A DNA stretch of 64,000 nt from Anaeramoeba ignava BMAN. Its lineage: Eukaryota; Protista; Anaeramoebae. A program made the translations under genes and the position numbers. Under the pieces are notes generated by a model that had not been told where the DNA came from, searched no databases, and saw only the letters and a list, made by a program, of their open reading frames with translations. Shown here one piece after another: positions 2,095 to 25,081 of this stretch (within the stretch, counting starts at the first letter, position 1; each line of letters starts with the position of its first letter). The stretch spans positions 124,001 through 188,000 of the forward strand of contig JAPDFW010000084.1 in NCBI GenBank assembly GCA_028826165.1, written 5' to 3'.

Positions 2095-3794
2095 TTAAAT
2101 GAAATAAGATTCAAGTTCATCAACAACCCATGAAGTATAAGAACCAGCTAAATAACTTTGAGCTTCATTTGATTCATAAGTAATTCCATTAGGTGGATTA
2201 TAACTATAACCAAAATTTGAACCACCACCTTGTAAATTAGAACCTAAATAAAAATCAGCTCCACGACCAAATACTGGACCATAACTTAAATTAGAACAAA
2301 TTGCACGATCTTGTTTATATGTAAACTTTTCAGGTATTCTATCCCCTTTATCATTTCTTAATGAAAAAATAAATGCATTTGAGTCATTAATGTCTTCATA
2401 ACCTGATTGAACATATTTAAATCCAACTTGAGTAAATCCTCCAAAAATAAAATTTTGTTTTGTTTTGATAATAATTAATGTTTTTCCTTTCCCATCAACT
2501 GCTTTATGCCAATTTTGAGAATTAAATCCATCTCTTTTTGCTGAAAATCCTTTTTTCATTTTAGAAAAAAAATCATTATCATTTATCCATTCTTGTAATT
2601 TCTTAACATATTCAATATCTTGAATAATTTCTGAATCTGAAAAAATCTTTTGTAATTCCATTTCTTGTTTCATTTTCTCAACTTCTTTCTTCCATTTCTC
2701 TTCAATTTCAATTTTCATTTGTTGATTTTCCTTCTCTTTGTTTTCAATTTCTTTGTTTTTATCTTCAACTTCTTTCTTCCATTTCTCTTCAATTTCTTTC
2801 TCTTTGTTTTCAATTTCAATTTTCATTTGTTGATTTTCCTTCTCTTTGTTTTCAATTTCTTTGTTTTTATCTTCAATTTCTTTCTTCCATTTCTCTTCAA
2901 TTTCAATTTTCACTTGTTGATTTTCTTTTTGATTATCTTGAATAACTTTGTTTTGAATATCAACTAAAAAAGATTTAGGAAAAAAATCAAATTGTTTTAA
3001 TTTATCAAAATCTTGTTTTGAAATTGAATCTTTATCAAATAATGAAAAAAAAGAATGAAATAATCTTTTCTTTTCAATTCCCTTTTCTTTTTCTTTTTCT
3101 TTTTCTTTCTTTCCTTTTAATCTTTGATTTCTTTTTTCAATCCAATTATTTAAAAATTGAAAAAAATCAAATTGAAAAATTTCTTTTTTTTCTTGTTTAA
3201 ATTGAATAAATTTGATAATTTCTTCTTTAGTTAAATTGAATAAATTCTCATTATTTTGAATTTGGGAAAAATTTTGATTTATTAATTCAAAACATTTTAT
3301 TTCAATTTCATTTGAATTTAAATTTCGATTTTGGAATAAAAATTGGAAAAAATTTGAATAATTAATTGAATTTAAAATTTTTTTTTGAATAATTTCTTTC
3401 AATAAATTTAATTTAAAATAAATTGAAATTTCTAATAATTGAATAAGATTTTCTTGATTCTCAAAAGAAATATTTCCATAATAAATATAACTCAAAAATT
3501 GATTCCATTTCTTTTTATTAAATTGATTTAAAGAAATAGAAAGAGATTCTTTGCCTTAATGATTCATTAAAAAGGAGATCTTGAAGATAAAATTGATTTA
3601 TGAACTTTAATTTCAAAAGGATTTGATTTATTCTCAACAAAAATTGAAAAATCTTTAAATGAATTTCCATTTAAAAGGTTTGAATAATTTTTAATTAAAT
3701 TTTTTGTTACTTTTTTTTCTAAATTTTTCATTTCATTTTCATTTTGATTTTGATTTGCATTTTCAATTTGGTTATTATTATTATTATTATCCAT
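2095..3794 (-). CDS. BTB-BACK-coiled-coil-TLDc protein, frameshifted at about 3495-3570
   Basis: ORF 3567..3794 gives the BTB start (FKDFSIFV...IKVHKSILSSRSPF). ORF 2095..3495 continues BTB/BACK, a repeat coiled coil and TLDc (FSAKRDGF, GKGKTLIIIKT, FIFGGFT, FIFSL, YGPVFG.G.D, ELESY). The gap reads FNESLRQESLSISLNQFNKKEMESIL once four homopolymer indels are corrected. Confidence 0.85.
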
Positions 3795-4199
3795 TTTGTT
3801 TTTGTTTTTGTTTTTGTTTTTTTTGTGTTTTTGTTTTTGTTTTTAAAAAAAAGGAAAAAATGAAAAAAAATTTAAAAAAATAAATAAAAAGTGGATTTTG
3901 AAAATAAATAAAAATATAAAAAATGAGAATAAATTTAAATTAATAATTAATTTAATTTTCTTTTTAATTTATTATTTTAAATTAATTTATTAATAAATTA
4001 TTATTATTTTTTATTAATTTTTTATTATTAAAAAAAAAGGAAAATTATTTTAATTTAATTTTTAATTTAATTTTTTTTTTTGGAATTTAAAAATTATTAA
4101 TAAATTTAAATTTAAAAACAAATTTCCAAATTAATATTAATTCAATTTAATTCAAAAAAAAAGATAAAATTTTAATTTCAAAAAAATCAATTTTCAAAA

Positions 4200-4908: not shown

Positions 4909-6682
4909 TTAATTTTGATTATTAAATTTCTTAATTAATAAATCAAATAAATTTGGATTTGTTTGATTTAATTGAAAATAATCAATTCCAATTTGAATTT
5001 CATTAATTATTTCTTGTGTAATTTGAATTTCATCTTTAATTTGATTTGAATAAATCCAATATTCAAATATTTGAAATGATTTATTACTTAATTCACTATA
5101 ATCTGTAACTTTATTGGAAGTATCATTTGTAACAGATAAAAACATTCCTCGATATAATTCACTTCTCATTATTAATATTAATTTAGGAAATTTATATTGT
5201 TTTTCTTTTCTTTCAATTATAAAATCTTTTTCATTTTCATTTTCATTTTCATTTAAATAAATTCTTTTAATTGTTTCTTCAATTTTTTCATTTGAATTTA
5301 TAATTTCTTTAATTTCAGAATATAATTTTGGATTTATTTTGGAAATATTTGAATAAATCATTTCAAATACTTGATTTGATTCTTTAATTGATTTTTTTGA
5401 AATAATTTCTTGAAGTTTTTCAATTTGGTTTTGATTTTGATTTAATCTATATTTTAATATTAATTTATGAGCTTCAATTATTTCTCCATTTTCTGTTTTA
5501 AATGAAATATCACAAAATTCTTTTCTTTTAAATAATTTTATCAAATCTTCTTCAAGATTGGAAAAAGAAGAAGGAGAATAATAAAGAAATGATCTTGAAT
5601 ATCCACAAGAAATATGATAATTAGAAATATCTTCATTAAATCTTAATTTAGGAAGTTTAATTTGAATTGGAGTTATTTGAAATTCTGTATCTCCAATTCC
5701 TAATTCACCAAAGAAATTATCTCCAAATCCAATCAGTTTTGAATTGGAAGTTAAAATCAAAGTATGATAATTTCCAACAGAAAAATCAAGAATATTATCA
5801 TCATTTTCAAATAAAGATGATTTGATTTCAGTAAATTTATAAGTAGTTTCATATTTGCCAAGTCCATTATATTGCCAATTTCCACATGAATAAAGTTTTC
5901 TTTTTGGATTTTGATTTTCATTTTCAATCAACATTATTGAATGATTAAATCCACATTGAATATCAATTATTTTGCCTTTTGGAATATTTTGGATTTTGGT
6001 TAATTTTTTGATTTGTGTTTTTTTTCTTCTTGATTTTCCTAATCCGAGTTGGCCATCATAATTATCACCGCATCCAAATAATTCTTGATTTGAATTTAAA
6101 AAGAAAAATAGAATTTGAAGAATTTCCTGAAAATATTTTAGAAACATTTTTCATCATTAAAATTGGTTTTTCTGTTTTTTCAAGTGTTTCAGAATCAAAA
6201 CCAAGTTGACCATAATAATTTGAACCAATTCCATAAACATTTTGATTTGAAGTTAATAAGTAAATTGAAAACCTTCCAGAAACAACATCTTGAATTATTC
6301 TATCATTTTTATCTTCAATTAATGATGAAATATTGATAAATTTATTTGGATTTTCTGGATTAATATCTTTTCCTTTGGCAAATACATTTCCTTCTTTTGT
6401 TAAAATAGCTTCATTTTGAAAACCAACAGATACTTTTTGAATATTTTCAATTTGAATTTTTTCAGGTTTTTGATTTAAATCATTTAAATATTCTATTGCT
6501 TTTCCATTTTTAAAAAGGAAAATTTTTGAAAATTGACTTAATGAAATTTGTTTAATTTGTTTTTCATTTTCATTTTCATTTTCATTTTTAAATTTAAATT
6601 GAATTGGTTTTGTTATTTTATTTGGTTTATTTTTTAAAAGAATTGGTTTTTCATTTTGACCAAAAAATAAAATTTCATTCAT
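4909..6682 (-). CDS. RCC1-repeat plus BTB domain protein (RCBTB-like), one frameshift at about 6100
   Basis: RCC1 motifs (GSNYYGQLG, CGDNYDGQLGLG, CGFNHS, VGNYHTL, GDNFFGELG) followed by BTB (FCDISF...AHKLIL) and a second BTB-like block. ORFs 6065..6682 and 4909..6147 join by removing one T from CTTTTTA. Confidence 0.88.
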
Positions 6683-6776
6683 TTTTGAAAAGAAAAAAAA
6701 TGAAAAAATGATTTTTAATTTTTAATTTTGATTTTGGAATTAGAAAGAAAATAAATCAAATGAATTATTTTTATTA

Positions 6777-8393
6777 TTATTTTTCTTTTTCCATCTTTTC
6801 AAAAACACGGATTAAATTTGAATTTGGATTTAAATCATAAAATTCAATAGCATCAATAAGTTCAAAAGCAATATCTTGAGTTATATGGTCAATTTTATCT
6901 GTATAAATAAATCTCAATAAGGCTTGAATAGCAGCAGGAGTTCTTTGACTATAATCAGAAACTTCATGAGAAGAATCAGTAACACATTCAAACATGCCAC
7001 GAAATAAGCCACTTCTTAAAGCAAGAAATTCTTGATGAACATGAAATTTTTGGTCTTCACATTTGAGGGTGAAATTTGTAGTTGGATCGTTTTGCAATCC
7101 ATCATAAAGCCTTGTGAAATCATCCTTCAGCTTCTGTATTTGATTGGGAGCATAAGGCTCAATTGAGAAAAATTGGAAAAATTGGGTCATTAATTCCTTC
7201 TCTTGCAATTCAACATTAATTGAATGGAGAATTCCTGTGTATAAATATTCAATAATATACTGAATCGCATTTGCAGACAAAACAGACGCCTTCGATATGA
7301 AATCATTCATTGTTTTCCCGTTCAGTCTGGATTCAATAATGACTTTGTGGAACTTGATTTTCTTGTGATCCCTTGAAATGATTTCTGAATCACAAAAATT
7401 TTGGTTTTGCAAAAATTCAACCAAATCTTGCAAAAAAGAATCTAAATGAAACTTCAAAACATAAATATCCTCCAAATAGTCGTTATCAAAACCACCGAAA
7501 ATAACAAGTTCAGTGGGGCTTTTGATGACGCAATTGTGTCTTAAACGAGCCGTGATTTTATCTCCTTCATATTTAAGAGGAAACCATTTATTTGAATGAA
7601 AATCATAACAAGATAGTTCATCATGTGGCATGTTGCTATGAAACCCGGAAAACAGAATCAAGTTGTCAAACAAGTTACAAATAGTATGACCAAAACGACT
7701 GATTGGCCAATTTGGGTGTTTGTCATCTGTGATATTGCTCCATTTTCGGGTCAGTAAATCAAACTTGAACAAACAATTAGAATCTTCAAAATCAGTTTGT
7801 GTTGTCCCACCGTATAAATACAAAGAATCCGAAAAAAGATTAAGCGTGTGCGAAGTAAGCAATCTTTTCGGATAATCCTCACTTGATTTCTCTTCCTGCG
7901 GTGTGGCAATGCTGGACCAGAGAAGCTTATTTGTATCAAAAACAAGAATATCACCAGCAGTGTCTCTTTTTTGATTCATTGGTTCAGATCCATAACAAAT
8001 CAATAAAGGCCCATAAAACACCGCTGCGTGATCGCAAATGATTACAGGACAATTCGGAAGTCTTTCCCATTTCTTGGTTTTTAAATCAAAACAGAAAAGA
8101 TCCCCTATTTCTTCATGTGATTTATTTAGTCCCCCAAATACATATAATTTATTGTTGTAATAATTCAATGTGTGAGCTGATCTTGGCTCAGGTGCTACTC
8201 CTTTGCACTCTATTTCTGTCCATTTTTTAGTCTCGAAATCAAAACAATCAAGTGTGTTCACTCGTAATTTGGTGCATCTTCCCCCAAATGTATATAATTT
8301 CCCATCTACAAAACAACTGGATTGATTGCTTCTTGGTGTTGTATTATTTTCTGTTTTGATTTTTTCACAAGTTATTTTCCTAACAAATTCCAT
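6777..8393 (-). CDS. Kelch-repeat plus tandem BTB protein (LZTR1-like architecture)
   Basis: 538-aa intronless ORF with six Kelch repeats (LYTFGG, PRSAHT, LYVFGG, LYLYGG, RFGHT, VIFGG) and two BTB blocks (FCDSEI...FHKVII; FHVHQEFLALRSGLF). Confidence 0.92.
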   Translation of the reverse strand: MEFVRKITCEKIKTENNTTPRSNQSSCFVDGKLYTFGGRCTKLRVNTLDCFDFETKKWTEIECKGVAPEPRSAHTLNYYNNKLYVFGGLNKSHEEIGDLFCFDLKTKKWERLPNCPVIICDHAAVFYGPLLICYGSEPMNQKRDTAGDILVFDTNKLLWSSIATPQEEKSSEDYPKRLLTSHTLNLFSDSLYLYGGTTQTDFEDSNCLFKFDLLTRKWSNITDDKHPNWPISRFGHTICNLFDNLILFSGFHSNMPHDELSCYDFHSNKWFPLKYEGDKITARLRHNCVIKSPTELVIFGGFDNDYLEDIYVLKFHLDSFLQDLVEFLQNQNFCDSEIISRDHKKIKFHKVIIESRLNGKTMNDFISKASVLSANAIQYIIEYLYTGILHSINVELQEKELMTQFFQFFSIEPYAPNQIQKLKDDFTRLYDGLQNDPTTNFTLKCEDQKFHVHQEFLALRSGLFRGMFECVTDSSHEVSDYSQRTPAAIQALLRFIYTDKIDHITQDIAFELIDAIEFYDLNPNSNLIRVFEKMEKEK

Positions 8394-13975: not shown

Positions 13976-14091
13976 TAAAAAATAAAGAAAAAAATGAAAA
14001 AATGAAAAAATTAAAATTAAAATTAAAATTTTTTTTCATTTTTTTCATTTTTTTTCCATTTTTTTTCCGTTTTTTTTAGAATTAATATAAA
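13976..14091. promoter_or_regulatory. Short bidirectional promoter with mirrored TCATTT initiator-like motifs
   Basis: 116 bp between divergent ATGs, with AAAATGAAAAAATGAAAA on the left and TTTTCATTTTTTTCATTTT on the right. Confidence 0.65.
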
Positions 14092-17000
14092 ATGAACTAT
14101 AATCCAACTTTAACTCCAGCTAATATGGTAACTCAAATTCTATTTCTCGGGAGAGACTTTAGTCATAAACCAAAGCAAGCTAAATTCAATAAAAATAAGA
14201 TTCAAAGATTTTCAGAAAGAGCTAAAACAATAATTAATCATATAAGGAAAATGAGTAAAAACCATTTTGCAAAATAAAATAGAAAATCAAAAAAAAAATT
14301 TAAACCGAAAATTTCAATCAAAATTTAAATATAAAAGATCTTCAATCAGACTCAAATAAAGCAGAGAATCTTAAAGAAGAAATTACACACACATTTAATT
14401 TCTTTAAAAATTCAAGTAATTTCCTTTTAAAACATACAGATACAAATTGGATTCATCAATTTACAAAACATGGAACTGCAAAAGATCATTTTAAGAAATT
14501 ATTTGAAGATATGAAAGTATGTGGACTTTCATTATCACAAGAAATTTCGGAAATGTGGGGTTCTACAAAAGAAGATGAAATAGATGAGGGTTTGTTTATT
14601 TATTATTTATTATTTAATATTTATTATTTAATATTTAATATTTATTATTTAATATTTAATATTTATTATTTATTATTTATTATTTAATATTTAATATTTA
14701 ATATTTATTTAATATTTAATATTTATTATTTAATATTTATTATTTAATATTTATTATTTAATATTTAATATTAAAGAAAAAGATAGTGATGAATTCTTTC
14801 AAATTCTCGAAGATCTTCTTGAAGATAAAGTTCATCTTGATAAAATTATTGAACAGCAAACAAAAATCAAATCAATTAATAAAAATCAAATTTATGAAGC
14901 TCTTGAACATCAAAAATTTTTATTTAGTTTACATAAAGAATATGAACCAGAAAATTGGGAAAGAAATATTCATATTTCGGAAATTCCTCCTTCTCATTTG
15001 AAATTTGGTAATCGTATTGGAATTGGAGGATATGGAGAAGTAAAAAGTTCTTTTAATATTTTATTATTAAATTAATCAACATAAATTGGATTGAAAAAAA
15101 ATAATTTTTTTGATTGATTATTTAAAAAGGTTTTTCTTGGAGAAAGAAATGGAGAAACGGTTGCAATAAAACAATTAATTGATTTACAAACAAATTCTGA
15201 TGTAGTTCAACAATTTAAAAAAGAAGTTTATATTCTTGCGTAAAACTAAAAAAGAAATTTATTATAAATTTTTATATTTATATTTATATTATTATCACAA
15301 TCTTCATAAAAATTTAAATATTCTTAGAGGTTGTCAACATAGAAATATTATTCAACTTCTTGGAGGTCGGATTTCTGGTGTAAAATTTAAGAAAATTATT
15401 CAAGAAAAAAATTATTCAAGAAAAAAATTATTTAAAAAAATTATTTAAAAAATTTTCAACAATTTTAAAAGCCTCCATATTATTATGTAATGGAATATCA
15501 TAAACTTGGAGATTTATCCAATTTTATTCACTCCATCCAAAAACCTCTTTATATTTTGCTTGATATTGCACGACAAGTTTGTGTTGGAATGCAATTTCTT
15601 CATGATAAAAAAGTTATGCATCGGTAAATCAATTTGTTTAGTTCATTTTATTTTCTATTTTTATGGAAATAATTTTTCCAAAAACTAAAATCAAAAAAAA
15701 CCAAATATTTTTTTTAGGGATTTAAAACCACAAAATATTTTAATTAGTGAACAAGATGGAGAATTTGTTGCAAAAATTATTGATTTTGGAGATTGCTCTG
15801 TTGACAAAACATTACAAAATACATTAAAAGGAACACCAGGAAGGATTGCACCAGAAGTAGTAAGTAATCCATTTAAGAATCATTTAAGAATTATTTAAGA
15901 ATCATTTACAAACCATTTACAAATCATTTACAAATCATTTACAAATCATTTACAAATAATTAACAAATCATTTAAAAATCATTTACAAACCATTTACAAA
16001 TAATTTACAAATAATTTACAAATCATTTACAAATAATTTACAAATCATTTACAAATAATTTACAAATCATTTACAAATAATTTACAAATCATTTACAAAT
16101 AATAATTTACAAATAATTTACAAATAATTTACAAATAATCATTTACAAATAATTTACAAATAATTTACAAATAATCATTTACAAATAATTTACAAATAAT
16201 CATTTACAAATAATTTACAAATCATTTACAAATCATTTAAAAATTATTTAAAAATCATTTACAAACCATTTACAAATAATTTACAAATCATTTACAAATC
16301 ATTTAAAAATCATTTACAAATCATTTACAAACCATTTACAAATAATTTACAAATAATTTACAAATCATTTACAAATCATTTACAAATAATATACAAATCA
16401 TTTACAAACCATTTACAAATAATTTATAAATAATATTCAAATAATTTACAAATCATTTACAAATAATTTACAAATAATTTACAAATAATTTACAAATAAT
16501 TTACAAATAATTTACAAATAATTTACAAATAATTTACAAATAATTTACAAATAATTTACAAATAATTTACAAATCATTTACAAATAATTTACAAATCATT
16601 TACAAATAATTTACAAATAATTTACAAATAATTTACAAATAATTTATAAATAATTTACAAATAATATACAAATCATTTACAAATAATTTACAAATAATTT
16701 ACAAATCATTTACAAATAATTTACAAATAATTTACAAATAATTTACAAATAATTTACAAACCATTTACAAATAATTTACAAATAATTTACAAATAATTTA
16801 CAAATAATTTACAAATAATTTACAAATAATTTACAAATAATTTACAAATAATTTACAAATAATTTACAAATAATTTACAAATAATTTACAAATAATTTAC
16901 AAATAATTTACAAATAATTTACAAATAATTTACAAATAATTTACAAATCATTTACAAATAATTTAAAAATCATTTACAAATCATTTACAAATCATTTAAA

Positions 17001-20000
17001 AATAATCATTTACAAATAATTTACAAATAATTTACAAATAATTTACAAATAATTTACAAACCATTTACAAATAATTTACAAATAATATTCAAATAATATT
17101 CAAATCATTTACAAACCATTTACAAATCATTTACAAATAATCATTTACAAATAATTTACAAATCATTTACAAATAATTTACAAATCATTTACAAATCATT
17201 TACAAATAATATTCAAATAATATTCAAATCATTTACAAACCATTTACAAATAATTTACAAATAATTTACAAATAATTTACAAACCATTTACAAATAATTT
17301 ACAAATAATTTACAAATCATTTAAAAATAATTTACAAATCATTTACAAATAATTTACAAATCATTTACAAATCATTTACAAATAATTTACAAATAATTTA
17401 CAAATAATTTACAAACCATTTACAAATAATATTCAAATAATTTACAAATAATTTACAAATAATTTACAAATAATTTACAAATCATTTACAAATCATTTAC
17501 AAATCATTTACAAATAATATTCAAATAATATTCAAATATAAAGATAAATAATTTACAAATAATTTACAAATAATTTACAAATCATTTACAAATCATTTAC
17601 AAATCATTTACAAATCATTTACAAATAATTTACAAATAATTTACAAATAATTTACAAACCATTTACAAATAATATTCAAATAATTTACAAACCATTTACA
17701 AATAATTTACAAATAATTTACAAATAATTTACAAATCATTTACAAATAATTTACAAATAATTTACAAATCATTTACAAATAATTTACAAACCATTTACAA
17801 ACCATTTACAAACCATTTACAAACCATTTACAAATAATTTACAAATAATTTACAAATAATTTACAAATCATTTACAAATCATTTACAAATCATTTACAAA
17901 TAATTTACAAATCATTTACAAATAATATTCAAATATAAAGATAAATAGTGAAGCAGGTTACACATTCTCAGCAGATATTTTCAGTTTTGGAATGATCTTA
18001 TGGGAAATATATCATAGACAACAACCATTTTCTGGATTAACTTTCAACCAAATCAATGCATTACTTATTTCACAGAAAAACATAGAAGAAAAAAGACCTA
18101 AAATCAAAGAAGATTGCCCATCAAACTTGAAGAAATTAATAGAAGAATGCTGGGCAGAAATACCAACAGAACGACCATCATTCAAGAAAATCGAGCATGA
18201 ATTATCAGAAATATTAGTAGAAATGGAAAAAATGAACGACAATCAAAATATTGAGAATGATGAAAAACCAATAGTTAAAAATATCCAAAAAAGAATAGTT
18301 TCTGTGAAAAATGTCAAGAGTCTTATTAGTGCATGCAGAACAGCAAGTCCAGGAGAAGTTATTGAATTATCATCTGGAACTTATCATGTGAAAAAACCAC
18401 TTGTTTTGAATTCATCAGAAATTATTATTCGTCCCAAACGATTGATGAGAAATCAAGAGGTTAATATACAAATTGACAATTCACTCAAGCCTTTGATAAT
18501 TATTAAAGGACAGAAAAACATTATTCAAGGCATTCATTTGTGTTGCTATTTTGAATCCAAAAATAGTAATGAAATATTCAAGGAAAATATTGGCATTGTT
18601 GAAATTTGTGAAGGAAATGAGCATGTGATTCAAGAGTGCACAATTGAAAGCAAGGATTCGCGAATGTGTTGTGTTTTTGTTCACGGATCTGCAACAAATA
18701 CAACAATTAAAGAAAATAATATTTTTGGTGGAAAAAATGGAATTTTATTGTTTGATAAAGGATATTCAATCATTGAAAAAAATGAGATTTTTTCATCGTT
18801 TGAAAATGGAATAAGATGTGATTATGAATCTTCTGTTGATATTTTTGAGAACCGTATTCATAACAATTTAAAAAATGCGGTTATGATTAAGAATTCACGA
18901 GTTCAGTTGAAATTGAATCGGATATCATCTGCTCAATTTGGGGTTTTTGTGAAAAAGGCGCAATATGTTTTGATTGAACAAAACACGATATTTATGAATA
19001 GTTCTATTGGTGTTTATATAGAAAATGAATCTAAATGTGATATTTTATCAAATGAAGTGTTTCAAAATCGAATTGGAATTGATATTGATGAGACATCCAA
19101 AGTGAAAATTGAGGTAAATTTGAAAATCAAAATCAAAATCAATATTAAAATTAAAATTAAAATTATAATTAAAATTAAAATTTAAATTAAAATTAATATT
19201 AAAATTAAAATTAAAATTAAAATTAAAATCAAAATTTAAAATCAAAATCAAAATCAAAATTAAAATTAAAATTAAAAATCAAAATCAAAATTAAAATTAA
19301 AATTAAAATTAAAATTAAAATTAAAATCAAAATTAAAATTAAAATTAAAATTAAAATTAAAATTAAAATTAAAATTAAAATTAAAATTAAAATTAAAATC
19401 AAAATTAAAATTAAAATTAAAATTAAAATTAAAATTAAAATTAAAATTAAAATTAAAATTAAAATTAAAATTAAAATCAAAATTAAAATTAAAATTAAAA
19501 ATCAAAATCAAAATTAAAATTAAAATCAAAATTAAAATTAAAATTAAAATTAAAAATCAAAATTAAAATTAAAATTAAAATCAAAATTAAAATTAAAAAT
19601 TAAAATTAAAATTAAAATTAAAATTAAAATTAAAATTAAAAATCAAAAATTAAAATTAAAATTAAAATTAAAATTAAAATCAAAATTAAAATCAAAATTA
19701 AAATCAAAATTAAAATCAAAATTAAAATTAAAAAATTAAAATTAAAATTAAAATTAAAATTAAAATTAAAATTAAAATCAAAATTAATATTAAAATCAAA
19801 ATTAAAATTAAAATTAAAATTAAAATTAAAATTAAAATTAAAATCAAAATCAAAATTAAAATCAAAATTAAAAATTAAAATTAAAATTAAAATTAAAATA
19901 AAAATTAAAATTAAAATTAAAATTAAAATCAAAATTAAAATTAAAATTAAAATCAAAATTGAAATTAAAATCAAAATCAAAATTAAAATTCAAAATCAAA

Positions 20001-21459
20001 ATTAAAATCAAAATTAAATTTGAAATAGAAAAATACACTGTCGAAAAATGAAGACAAACAAATCAATATTCCATTAAGTAATCAAACAATAATACAAAAA
20101 GAAAACGAAATTGAGGAAATTGAAGATGATACAGAAATAGATTCAGGAGAAGATGATGTGCAAATGATTATACACGAACAACAAAAAAGAATAGTTGACA
20201 TTTCAGGAAAAACAGGAGGATTTAAAAGCATCAACGAAGCAATATCAATTTCATCACCAGGAGATACAATCAAGATTCTTGCAGGAATATACCAAGAAAA
20301 AATCATACTCGATAAAGAAAATCTGACAATAAAAGGAGCAAAAAATCAAAACGTTTCTTTAAAATTTAAAAAATCAAGTCCGCTTTTAATACAAGCGCAA
20401 ACAGGAACAATTTCAAATATAAACTTCATTTATGAAGGAGAAAGACAATATGCTGTTGAGATACCCAAAGGATCTGTTTGTTTGACGGATTGCACAATTC
20501 GTGGTCAAGGAGTTGCTTGTGTTGGGATACATGATTCAGCAAATCCGCAACTGAAAAGATGCAAGATTTCGCATGGAAAAGTTGGTGTTGTCTTCTATAA
20601 CTCGGCACAGGGCAAGCTTATTGAATGTGATATCTCTGAAAATGCAATTCAGGGAGTTGTCATCACAACAAATGCAACACCCGTCTTGTCTCATTGCAAT
20701 GTTTTCAAGAATAATCAAGGAGGAATTGCGATCTATGATTCGGGAAAAGGCGAAATTGAGCACTCCGATATCTCATTTAACAAGCTTTCGGGAGTGCAGA
20801 TTCGCAGTATTGCAATGCCTGTTTTTCATGATAACAATATACACCATAATCAACAGGCAGGAATATTTATTTTCGAAAGTGGAGGTGGTGAAGTTCTGAA
20901 AAACAAAATTTTCGAAAATGGAAAATCAGGAGTTGCAATTAAATCAAAATCAGACCCTAAAATTTTCGAAAATGAAATATATTCCAATAAGGAGTCTGGT
21001 GTGTTTGTTTACAACACGGGATTTGGGAGCATTGAAAATAACAAAATTTATTCTAATTCCTTAAGCGGTTTGCAAATCAAAGTTGAAAGTAATCCTCGAG
21101 TTAAGGGCAATTCCATTTATAATAACGAAGGTTCTGGAGTCTTTGTTTATCATCATGGTCTAGGCGTTATTGAGTTCAATGAGATACACTCGAATAATGT
21201 GCATGGGATCGATATTGGATCTGAATCGAATCCGGAGGTTCATTCGAATAGAATTTATAACAATGAATTGGGTGGTTTGTTTGTACTTACAAATGGTGCT
21301 GGTGTTTTTACTCAGAATCTTTTCTATTCAAATCAAGATCCTCAAATTTTTATTCAATCAAGATCTTCTCCTACTATTGATGATTCAAATATTATTCCTG
21401 AAAATGGAATTATTGATGAAAATAAACCAATGTCTGATCAAAGTTCGAAAAAGAAATGA
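14092..21459 (+). CDS. MLKL-like N-terminal helical domain, TKL-type protein kinase and two PbH1/CASH right-handed beta-helix regions (9 exons)
   Basis: Exons 14092-14254, 14338-14589, 14777-15039, 15130-15239, 15328-15379, 15472-15623, 15718-15859, 17941-19113 and 20029-21459 splice in frame at GT-AG. Kinase motifs: IGIGGYGEV, VAIK, FKKEV, HRDLKPQN, DFG, GTPGRIAPE, DIFSFGMILWE, CWAEIPTERPSF. C-terminal N.I..N...G repeats with FKSINEAI...PGDTIKILAGIYQE resemble FBXO11-type beta-helices. Kinase and beta-helix calls are firm; the MLKL-like call is less so. Confidence 0.88.
15860..17940 (+). repeat. 2.1-kb intron filled with an 11-bp repeat (TTTACAAATAA/TTTACAAATCA)
   Basis: GTAAGT donor at 15860 and AAG acceptor at 17940; interrupts the kinase between subdomains VIII and IX. 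Confidence 0.93.
19114..20028 (+). repeat. Intron filled with (AAAATT/AAAATC)n
   Basis: GTAAAT donor at 19114 and TAG acceptor at 20028; the flanking exons are in frame. Confidence 0.92.
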
Positions 21460-22580: not shown

Positions 22581-25081
22581 TCAATTAAATTGAGGACGAG
22601 GAGGTCTTGGAGGAGGCGGAGGTTTATTCATAGCATTTTGTCCTGTAGTAGGTCTTGGAGGTGGCGGAGGCTTATTAACTGGGGTTTGACCAGTAGGTCT
22701 TGGAGGTGGTGGAGGTTTATTAGGAGTTGGCCTTGGAGGGGTTTGGATATTAGTATGAGTTGGAGGCGGTGGGGGAGAGGAATGAGTTTCGAAATTCTTG
22801 GGAGAGGGTGTGCGATGGTTGGTGACTGGAGTAGGAGGCTTGTTCATGGTTGTTTGGACGGGAGATTTTGGGGTGTTGACAGTATGTACGGGAGAAGATT
22901 GAGTTATATTGGGCGAAGGTGTGTGAGTAGGTGTTGATGACATCGACTGATTCGGAAGATCGCCTCTTGTGCTGCCACTTGGATATTGTTTTTTGGTCAC
23001 TTTCATAGAGGGAACGGAAGGGAGATTTGTGTGGAAGTTCCAACGACCGTCAGAATCGCCATTTGTTGGAGTAGGTATTTTAGGGGGTGTTTGAATAGAT
23101 TGAGTTTGGGGGGATATAGGTTTGGGGGGAAGCGTTGGTTTTGCACCAGTAGGTTTTGGTGGTAATTGCGGTTTTGCTCCCATGGGTTTTGGAGGAAGTG
23201 TGGGCTTCGGTCCGATTTTGGGTGGCAGTTGAGGTTTGTTTTCTAAATCTGTGTTTATTGCGCCCATTGTGTTCATTGGTGGCCTCGGCGGTTGGGTTGG
23301 TTTGACTGCCATGGGCTTTGGTGGTAGCGACGGTTTTTGGGGAAGCGTTGGTGGCTCTCGTGGTTTCGGTGGGAGTGTCGGTCTTGTGCTGGTTTGTGGT
23401 TTGGGTGGTAATTGTGGTGAACGACGAATCGGAAGTGGTGGTCCTCCGCTGTTTCCGCTTTGCGATGGACTTTGGCGTCGTGGTGGCATGGGTGGCCCCC
23501 GGTTTACTGGTGGTGGTGACATCCGTGTGGGTCCTGTGTTCCGTGATGGTAATGTTGGTCCTTTTCTTGCTGTTGATCTTCCAATAGGTGATGTTTGTCG
23601 TCCTCGGCTTCGGCTGGGTAATGTTGGCATTCCTCCTCCGAACAATCCTTTATTATTAATATTATTAAATTTATTATTAAATTTATTATTAATTTAATTA
23701 TTATTATTTTATTATTATTAATTTAATTATTATTATTTTATTATTATTAATTTAATTATTAATTTATTATTATTAATTTAATTATTAAATTTATTATTAA
23801 ATTTATTATTTTTAAATTTATTATTAAATTTATTATTATTAAATTTATTATTAAATTTATTATTATTAATTTTATTATTATTATTAAATTTATTATTAAA
23901 TTTATTATTATTATTATTATTAAATTTATTATTATTAAATTTATTATTATTAAATTTATTATTATTAAATTATTATTATTAATTTTATTTATTATTAAAT
24001 TATTATTATTAATTTTATTTATTATTATATTATTATTAAATTTATTATTATTAAATTATTATTATTAATTTTATTTATTATTAAATTTATTATTATTAAT
24101 TTTATTTATTATTAAATTATTATTAAATTTATTATTATTAAATTTATTATTATTAAATTTATTATTATTAAATTTATTATTATTAAATTTATTATTAAAT
24201 TTATTATTATTAATTTTATTATTATTAAATTTATTATTATTAAATTTATTTATTATTAATTTTATTATTATTAAATTTATTATTAAATTTATTATTATTA
24301 AATTTATTATTATTATTTTATTATTAAATTTATTATTATTAAATTATTAAATTTATTATTATTATTATTAAATTTATTATTATTAAATTATTATTAAATT
24401 TATTATTATAAAATAAATTTATTATTAAATTTTATTAATATTATTATTATTAAATTATTATTAAATTTATTATTATTAAATTTATTATTATTAAAATTTA
24501 TTATTATTATTAATTTATTATTATTAAATTTATTATTATTATTATTATTAAATTTATTATTATTAATTTATTATTATTAAATTTAATTATTATTAAATTT
24601 ATTATTATTATTAAATTTTATTATTATTAAATTATTATTATTAAATTTATTATTAAATTTATTATTAAATTAATTATTAAATTTATTATTAATTTTATTA
24701 TTAAATTTATTATTAATTTTATTATTAAATTTATTATTAAATTTATTATTAAATTTATTATTATTAAATTATTATTATTATTATTATTAAATTTATTATT
24801 ATTCTTTTTTGCATTTTAATTTCTAATTTCAGTTCCTCTCTTCAATTAAATAAAAACAAAATAATTTCAAAATTTTCATTCTAAAAAAAAATTGAAAATA
24901 TTCAAACAAAAATAAAAATAAAAATAAAAATAAAAATAAAAATAAATATACCTCCACCGCCTCTACTAGGACTTTTTGAATCCTCTTTATCTAAAACAGG
25001 TGCACTTCTATCATTTGTAACAGCTTTTTTAAGTTTTTTAGAATTAAATCCACAAATTTGTTTTTGGAGTGCTGATTGCAT
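22581..25081 (-). CDS. Verprolin/WIP-family actin regulator (WH2 plus proline-rich)
   Basis: Exon 1 (24952-25081) MQSALQKQICGFNSKKLKKAVTNDRSAP carries the verprolin WH2 signature LKK..TNDRSAP. Intron 23648-24951. Exon 2 is polyproline-rich with a DGRWNFHTNLP motif resembling the WASP-binding segment. Confidence 0.85.
23648..24800. repeat. Intronic (TTA)n/ATTATTAAATTT low-complexity array
   Basis: Almost purely A/T repeat inside the WIP intron. Confidence 0.9.

Follow-up and report, generated by a model that had tools for sequence, protein, structure and literature searches.

The stretch considered here, called the window, comprises 64,000 nucleotides of the genome of Anaeramoeba ignava BMAN (GenBank assembly GCA_028826165.1, contig JAPDFW010000084.1, positions 124,001 to 188,000 of the forward strand) and contains, at window positions 14092-21459 (+), a predicted nine-exon gene for a protein (public record P0001) in which an MLKL_N domain precedes a kinase and a beta-helix tail. 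The explanation that best accommodates the evidence, and which is offered tentatively, is that this is a native, intron-rich A. ignava gene for one cytosolic three-module protein of 1,245 residues, and that this protein may act as an MLKL-type gated membrane effector contained in a single chain. The modules follow one another in the predicted chain as MLKL_N at residues 14-114, a predicted helix at 138-193 and a kinase of the tyrosine kinase-like (TKL) type at 213-466, with about 100 mostly helical, acidic residues lying between MLKL_N and the kinase. This is the arrangement that the initial annotation of the sequence had put forward, with a kinase placed directly after bundle and brace, as in MLKL.

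Assignment of the N-terminus of P0001 as a divergent member of the MLKL_N family is supported by the curated Pfam threshold. The family profile (PF22215) matches residues 14-114 with 32.7 bits (E 6.4e-8), against a gathering cut-off of 27 bits, and aligns with them over profile positions 2-102 without net insertion or deletion, whereas the next Pfam family on residues 1-200 reaches 14.7 bits, which is 17 bits lower; the resemblance to MLKL that had been proposed for this region thus exceeds chance. The call as such is already known, in that PF22215 stands in the automatic, precomputed Pfam list for P0001. Each of the two exons that encode the matching region also identifies MLKL_N as its best family when searched alone, exon 1 through residues 14-53 (profile positions 2-41, 14.2 bits) and exon 2 through its own residues 4-59 (profile positions 47-102, 12.5 bits), and the two matches are collinear and gapless across the splice once the split codon is counted. 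In a six-frame scan of the whole AT-rich genome (42.8 Mb in 147 contigs), the profile returned only 13 matches, all at the 5′ ends of one real gene family, and it returned none in 14 control genomes, which argues that a composition rich in Lys, Asn and Ile does not by itself yield such matches.

Individual residues can also be set against those of animal MLKL. A segment of mouse MLKL aligns gaplessly with P0001 residues 11-54 through the shared pattern QI[IL].LG ... K[YF] ... QR[LF]..R.....[LI][LI]..[LI], such that MVTQILFLG...QRF..R in the A. ignava protein stands opposite QIIKLG...QRL..R in the mouse. Downstream of this segment, an acidic turn of the form W....ED..D.E.D at residues 128-141 aligns with W..ED..D.EED of mouse MLKL, which bears out the W..ED..D motif that the initial annotation had ascribed to MLKL. 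The two N-terminal peptides quoted there are likewise present, the first in exon 1 from Met12 and the second across the junction of exons 2 and 3. Net charge is +8 over the bundle (+9 over residues 26-53 alone) and -12 over residues 128-212, which comprise the linker and the brace.

On the basis of modeling, a four-helix bundle is plausible for this region. A single-sequence AlphaFold2 prediction of residues 1-205 was all-helical and, with a predicted local distance difference test score (pLDDT) of 37.8, unusable as a model. When AlphaFold was supplied with a 16-row alignment of paralogues, exon pieces included, pLDDT rose to 69.4 with a predicted template modeling score of 0.44, although this model is partly circular because the alignment family is itself MLKL_N. 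In it, helices are predicted at residues 9-25, 34-53, 61-88, 92-98 (a short one), 100-127, 138-193 and 196-203. The bundle would thus cover about residues 9-127. The same order is found in the MLKL layout, in which the fourth and last bundle helix is preceded by a short extra helix and followed by the brace.

Immediately downstream, the kinase domain at residues 213-466 is matched by the Pfam PK_Tyr_Ser-Thr/Pkinase profiles with 170.8 bits, and exons 6 and 7 also match singly. MLKL and the RIP kinases are members of the TKL group, and the domain in P0001 is placed in this group because B-Raf (1.9e-38), followed by Roco4, is its best match among solved kinases; the best 60 of the 857 such matches are all B-Raf, Roco4 or EGFR. 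The glycine-rich segment GIGGYG220 and the motifs VAIK237, HRD330, DFG353 and APE375 are intact, and the kinase is therefore apparently catalytically competent, as far as its sequence indicates. Plant AtMLKLs are pseudokinases, as is animal MLKL, and P0001 falls outside this class, every catalytic motif having been kept. The initial annotation had singled out the intact VAIK, HRD and DFG motifs, found here at 237, 330 and 353, as a departure from MLKL, which is correct with respect to animals; a plant precedent exists in wheat Pm13, in which an MLKL head precedes a kinase that has lost none of its key catalytic residues and is required for immunity (PMC10951266). The 815 Poaceae and Arabidopsis proteins analyzed together with Pm13 include a cluster of MLKL_NTD-kinases (PMC10951266). 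An MLKL head followed by an intact kinase therefore has precedents in Pm13 and in hundreds of plant proteins.

The remainder of the protein forms two complete right-handed beta-helix domains, since each block begins with its own cap-like motif (..SPG[ED].I.L..G.Y..), which reads SPGEVIEL..GTY in exon 8 and SPGDTIKIL.G.Y in exon 9. The domains extend over about residues 580-769 and 830-1200, respectively, and are separated by an acidic linker. Pfam Beta_helix (PF13229) scores above its family threshold, with 234.3 bits over five stretches of P0001, and TIGR03804 (para_beta_helix) matches seven stretches across the whole protein. The two PbH1 blocks that had been noticed after the kinase were recovered separately, with Beta_helix scores of 70 bits in exon 8 and 180 bits in exon 9, and the language-model neighbors of this part (score 0.97) are all Beta_helix or NosD. 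In NCBI and UniRef, P0001 bears the name “F-box only protein [Anaeramoeba ignava]”, which is misleading because no F-box was found in it; neither this domain nor a UBR domain appears among its Pfam matches with E up to 1. The NCBI name came about by automatic transfer and, as we guess, probably reflects a beta-helix resemblance to FBXO11; domain analysis of P0001 corrects it. The CASH/PbH1 domains of FBXO11-type proteins share with the P0001 tail their cytosolic, right-handed parallel beta-helix repeats; P0001 differs in having neither F-box nor UBR, and its nearest neighbors in feature space are bacterial beta-helix proteins.

The gene model that joins these modules was read exon by exon, each exon being searched singly, and the joined protein was analyzed through the public record. 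The nine exons yield a coding sequence of 3,738 nt, or 1,245 codons, without frame error; all eight introns have GT..AG borders with donors of the GTAAA/GTAAG type, and the phases agree at all eight junctions. Six introns measure 83-187 nt, introns 7 and 8 being the long ones, and intron 6 interrupts HRD within its Arg codon. An exhaustive phmmer search of 1.84 billion representative sequences with exon 2 returned P0001 (1,245 residues, 100% identity over residues 56-138) as the sole protein and no homolog beyond it. The sequence of P0001 equals the exon translations in order and has the same length, and the public annotation has thus reached the same exon structure. One public sequencing run, of unknown type, contains 0.51 of the words sampled from window positions 14050-15900. 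The window is strongly AT-rich (7-31% GC per 2 kb). Two other ways of accounting for the locus were considered and rejected: a ciliate-type genetic code, given that the 433-residue frame of exon 9 and the 397-residue frame of exon 8 lack TAA and TAG and that the gene ends in TGA, and contamination or recent transfer, given that the gene carries introns, minisatellites and a base composition of the host type.

If these modules cooperate as they do in MLKL, the basic bundle would be held at rest against the acidic brace and the kinase, an autoinhibited state conceived after MLKL and the plant MLKL_NTD-kinases. Binding of a ligand or a partner protein by the beta-helix domains would then cluster the protein, and the kinase would phosphorylate itself or a neighboring molecule, bringing about a conformational change. 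The bundle, once freed, would bind acidic membrane lipids, oligomerize, and perturb or permeabilize the membrane. By extension, P0001 might have a role in cell death or immunity, and its beta-helix domains could conceivably act as carbohydrate sensors, as had been suggested at the outset.

Animal MLKL, the executioner of necroptosis (solved as 4BTF, 2MSV and 6UX8), is the natural point of comparison. Like P0001, it begins with an MLKL_N domain, predicted in P0001 to be a four-helix bundle, which some 60-80 residues of helical brace connect to a kinase domain of the TKL fold; the two proteins also share a basic start to the bundle and an acidic turn (W..ED..D) leading into the brace. The two differ in that MLKL is a pseudokinase switched by RIPK3, whereas the catalytic motifs of P0001 are intact, and in that MLKL ends after the kinase, whereas P0001 continues for about 780 residues with its two beta-helix domains; moreover, the similarity of P0001 to MLKL is detectable through the Pfam profile only. 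Plant MLKL_NTD-kinases such as Pm13, together with AtMLKL1-3, also place an MLKL-type head and a brace before the kinase, and it is the Pm13 class that the P0001 kinase resembles in its catalytic state. These plant proteins belong to receptor-like kinase subfamilies (LRR_8B in the case of Pm13) and have no beta-helix tail, and P0001 has no detectable orthology to them. A fungal protein, P0053 of Gautieria morchelliformis, likewise contains MLKL_N (21-119) followed by a kinase (227-481) at the same spacing of about 100 residues, and the two kinase domains are 30% identical. It differs from P0001 in its RasGEF tail, in a catalytic loop that reads HGD and in an MLKL_N score of 26.6 bits, just under the cut-off; the N-termini of the two proteins do not align by BLASTP. 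What appears to be new in P0001, judging from these comparisons, is that it belongs to the Anaeramoebae, that its head is extremely divergent and that it ends in a double beta-helix tail, which appears to be unique.

A broader analogy can be drawn with the all-in-one NLRs that carry HeLo, CC or RPW8 heads (the fungal NLRs and plant ZAR1 and NRG1), which would share with P0001 a tripartite logic of membrane-attacking helical head, central switch and C-terminal repeat sensor; the analogy is one of function and not of homology. In P0001, the switch is a protein kinase rather than a NACHT or NB-ARC NTPase, and the repeats are PbH1 rather than LRR, WD40 or TPR. Fungal and plant NLRs have HeLo, HELL, RPW8 and CC heads, which are considered to be one and the same membrane-targeting module (PMC12881547).

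A general role in regulated membrane binding is about as likely for P0001 as one in killing, because other MLKL_N domains of A. ignava are joined to EF-hand, U-box, TPR and TLDc modules. It is possible, if on the doubtful side, that the same domains serve a non-lethal purpose, with the bundle recruiting or scaffolding an ordinary signaling kinase, equipped with a beta-helix for protein interaction, on an endomembrane, the symbiosome or the plasma membrane and with substrate phosphorylation as the output. MLKL_N would then be a modular N-terminal domain, as it is in at least nine other A. ignava genes, where it occurs with EF-hand, U-box, TPR, coiled-coil and TLDc modules. Since all catalytic motifs are kept, unlike in the animal MLKL pseudokinase, catalysis would probably be the output. 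Cytosolic beta-helix/CASH domains such as that of FBXO11 bind protein substrates, and the neighboring genes (RCC1-BTB, Kelch-BTB and proline-rich) show no immune clustering. Against a purely scaffolding bundle stand the layout of a basic bundle and an acidic brace, which resembles that of an autoinhibited effector, and the behavior of the MLKL_N, HeLo and RPW8 bundles of animals, plants and fungi that have been tested, which act by disturbing membranes (PMC12881547, PMC10951266).

Another alternative concerns the identity of the head. It is distinctly unlikely that the first 200 residues form a helical or coiled-coil region peculiar to this lineage and unrelated to MLKL, that the Pfam match is a borderline false positive and that the protein is a TKL kinase with a beta-helix, and it is here that the results weighing against the MLKL resemblance come together. 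The MLKL_N score lies just 5.7 bits over the cut-off, and the alignment covers profile positions 2-102 of 142 only. A phmmer search of PDB sequences with residues 1-205 found no solved MLKL. The bona fide MLKL_N paralogs in the same genome show no similarity to the P0001 head: hhalign of the P0001 N-terminus against their profile gave a probability of 0.2%, and a hidden Markov model built from these paralogs only scored P0001 at -4 bits, no better than shuffled sequences. The nearest language-model clusters of residues 1-205 are all MCAfunc, MLKL_N, DUF7792 or RPW8, at a score of 0.83 that serves as a lead only, as it lies within the range reached by shuffled proteins a third of the time. The fold searches made with the N-terminal model are similarly non-specific. 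Foldseek against the PDB gave no match at E <= 0.001, the top rows being FAT, ApoE and designed bundles; VIA-align, used both wide and for re-ranking, returned generic four-helix bundles, MLKL was absent from the best 50 of these searches, and a shape search of the ESM Atlas also retrieved generic four-helix bundles. On the AlphaFold and Foldseek check that the initial annotation had suggested, a four-helix bundle is thus plausible, and the searches match bundles in general and not MLKL specifically. Finally, no ortholog of P0001 was found in the databases searched.

Several observations are nevertheless difficult to reconcile with a spurious match. The E value of 6.4e-8 is accompanied by a lead of 17 bits over the next family; MLKL_N is matched in register across a splice by two exons that are encoded separately; the profile makes no spurious matches in a genome of 42.8 Mb with equally biased composition; and a TKL kinase follows the domain directly, at the spacing found in MLKL-type proteins. 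It is very improbable that the gene model is chimeric, with introns 7 and 8 separating two or three genes (MLKL_N with the kinase N-lobe on one side, one or two beta-helix genes on the other). These introns are 10-20 times longer than the other six, and the exon joins, including that of exons 1-3 to the kinase, are predicted from the public gene model and from profile continuity. Intron 7, however, interrupts one and the same kinase domain between APE and subdomain IX, with both halves in one Pfam match (213-466, 170.8 bits); the matching phases close the frame at 3,738 nt, exon 9 lacks a start context and follows on from exon 8 in phase 0, and the public annotation gives the same model.

The combination of three modules in P0001 is apparently a singleton, since the searches return no protein with the same modules. 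A word-indexed search with residues 1-205 retrieved P0001 alone, exon 2 found its own locus alone in its own genome, and the relatives returned by the full-length protein share either the kinase or the beta-helix, never both. At the nine or more other A. ignava loci with MLKL_N, the domain is joined to EF-hand-like, U-box, TPR, coiled-coil and TLDc modules and never to a kinase. The initial annotation had called for paralogs with exchanged C-termini; tblastn searches with the exons for kinase and beta-helix, made against nine loci with MLKL_N and six with a beta-helix, found no second kinase fusion. A profile built from three of the paralogs (P0002-P0004) and one further locus matches the N-terminal domains of mouse and human MLKL in the PDB over 140 residues (E 8.7e-6 to 1e-4), and genuine MLKL_N domains are thus present in A. 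ignava. P0002-P0004 and at least six further loci have in common with P0001 an N-terminal MLKL_N split by an intron after helix 2; they differ from it in containing neither kinase nor beta-helix and in belonging to a different subfamily, the profile of which does not recognize P0001. Six other A. ignava loci encode related beta-helix domains, with no kinase nearby.

Animals and plants have MLKL-type executioners, the helical heads of which are also known from fungi; P0001 would extend this design to a free-living, anaerobic and deep-branching protist and would add to the layout of head, brace and kinase an apparently active kinase and a built-in candidate sensor. P0001 also offers a compact, single-chain system in which the gating of a membrane-attacking bundle by a kinase domain could be studied. 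Bacterial symbionts live in A. ignava, and modules for regulated membrane attack or recognition could bear on their control. A further, unlikely possibility is that P0001 serves innate immunity or self-destruction as an all-in-one receptor: an active kinase would take the place of the NTPase switch found in NLRs, the beta-helix domains would sense a ligand of microbial or symbiont origin, and the bundle would rupture the membrane. In that case, the coupling of bundle, brace and kinase that underlies necroptosis would either be older than the divergence of animals, plants and Anaeramoebae or have arisen independently at least three times. The weight that P0001 can carry is limited in that it is a singleton without orthologs, its head scores modestly above threshold and the domain call was already part of automatic annotation. 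Searches of the literature turned up no paper that deals with MLKL-like proteins in Anaeramoeba or in any other protist, the sole co-occurrence of MLKL and Anaeramoeba being a figure abbreviation in a preprint on the effectors of a bacterial symbiont, and no description was found of the MLKL_N-U-box-TLDc architecture. The exons and the two minisatellite introns of the P0001 gene are listed in Table 1, along with intron 2 and the loci of the MLKL_N family.

Table 1. Exons and selected introns of the P0001 gene (window coordinates) and loci of the MLKL_N family in A. ignava
Feature	Position	Strand	Content
Exon 1	14092-14254	+	Residues 1-54 plus 1 nt; helices 1-2 of the predicted MLKL_N bundle, basic patch at residues 26-53; donor tga/GTAAAAAC
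Exon 2	14338-14589	+	Residues 55-139; predicted bundle helices 3-5 plus the W..ED..D acidic turn
Intron 2	14590-14776	+	187 nt, AT-rich tandem repeat
Exon 3	14777-15039	+	Residues 139-226; acidic linker, long brace-like helix, start of kinase (GIGGYG)
Exons 4-7	15130-15239, 15328-15379, 15472-15623, 15718-15859	+	Kinase N-lobe through APE
Intron 7	15860-17940	+	2,081 nt, almost all minisatellite; Tandem Repeats Finder (TRF) 15878-17935, period 11, 185.4 copies, 90% matches
Exon 8	17941-19113	+	Residues 379-769; kinase C-lobe, linker, first beta-helix domain; PK_Tyr_Ser-Thr 56 bits, Beta_helix 70 bits
Intron 8	19114-20028	+	915 nt, about 149 copies of a 6-nt unit; TRF 19123-20026, period 6
Exon 9	20029-21459	+	Residues 770-1245 plus TGA; acidic linker, second, larger beta-helix domain; Beta_helix 180.5 bits, NosD 85 bits
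MLKL_N family loci L014-L022	G000 contigs C9, C102, C63, C143, C139 (twice), C36, C35, C115		Proteins P0002-P0004; MLKL_N up to 50.4 bits

The minisatellites of the two long introns are built from different units, 185 copies of AATAATTTACA in intron 7 and about 149 copies of AAAATT in intron 8, and few unique bases lie between these arrays and the splice sites. Among the MLKL_N loci, L022 (G000:C115:355500-365400, -) contains two tandem genes of a second subfamily, beginning MAGAVVNGIFK.. and MVETVLSYTYQ.., each of which continues with an EF-hand-like exon and several repeats of about 230 residues that start with PN[IV]L[LI][LV]ASDDR and have a faint DUF4159 match only. At L018:8573-9253 (-), the position occupied in P0002 by the intron between helix 2 and helix 3 is read through as an in-frame, Lys-rich insertion of 26 residues, which may be a retained or mis-annotated intron. 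Among the beta-helix loci, L024 (G000:C69:308000-317900) has RGS, RhoGEF and MORN frames directly upstream, on the same strand, of a 606-residue beta-helix frame related to the P0001 tail (open reading frames 1027-1995, 2105-3847 and 5893-7713, +), and it may encode another signaling protein with a beta-helix C-terminus.

The genes surrounding that of P0001 encode an RCC1-BTB, a Kelch-BTB, a proline-rich and an MPN-like protein and provide no functional hint. The RCC1-BTB gene (window 4909-6682, -) lies 7.4 kb upstream, and close paralogs of it (L017:4965-6806, L018:3447-5279 and L021:5463-7532) sit immediately downstream of three MLKL_N-U-box-TPR-TLDc genes, a repeated neighborhood that probably reflects a large family and segmental duplication. 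Just downstream of the P0001 gene, at window positions 22581-23645 (-), is a proline-rich frame of 354 residues with many PPPPP and PTLPPKP motifs, which resemble those of formin or WASP ligands.

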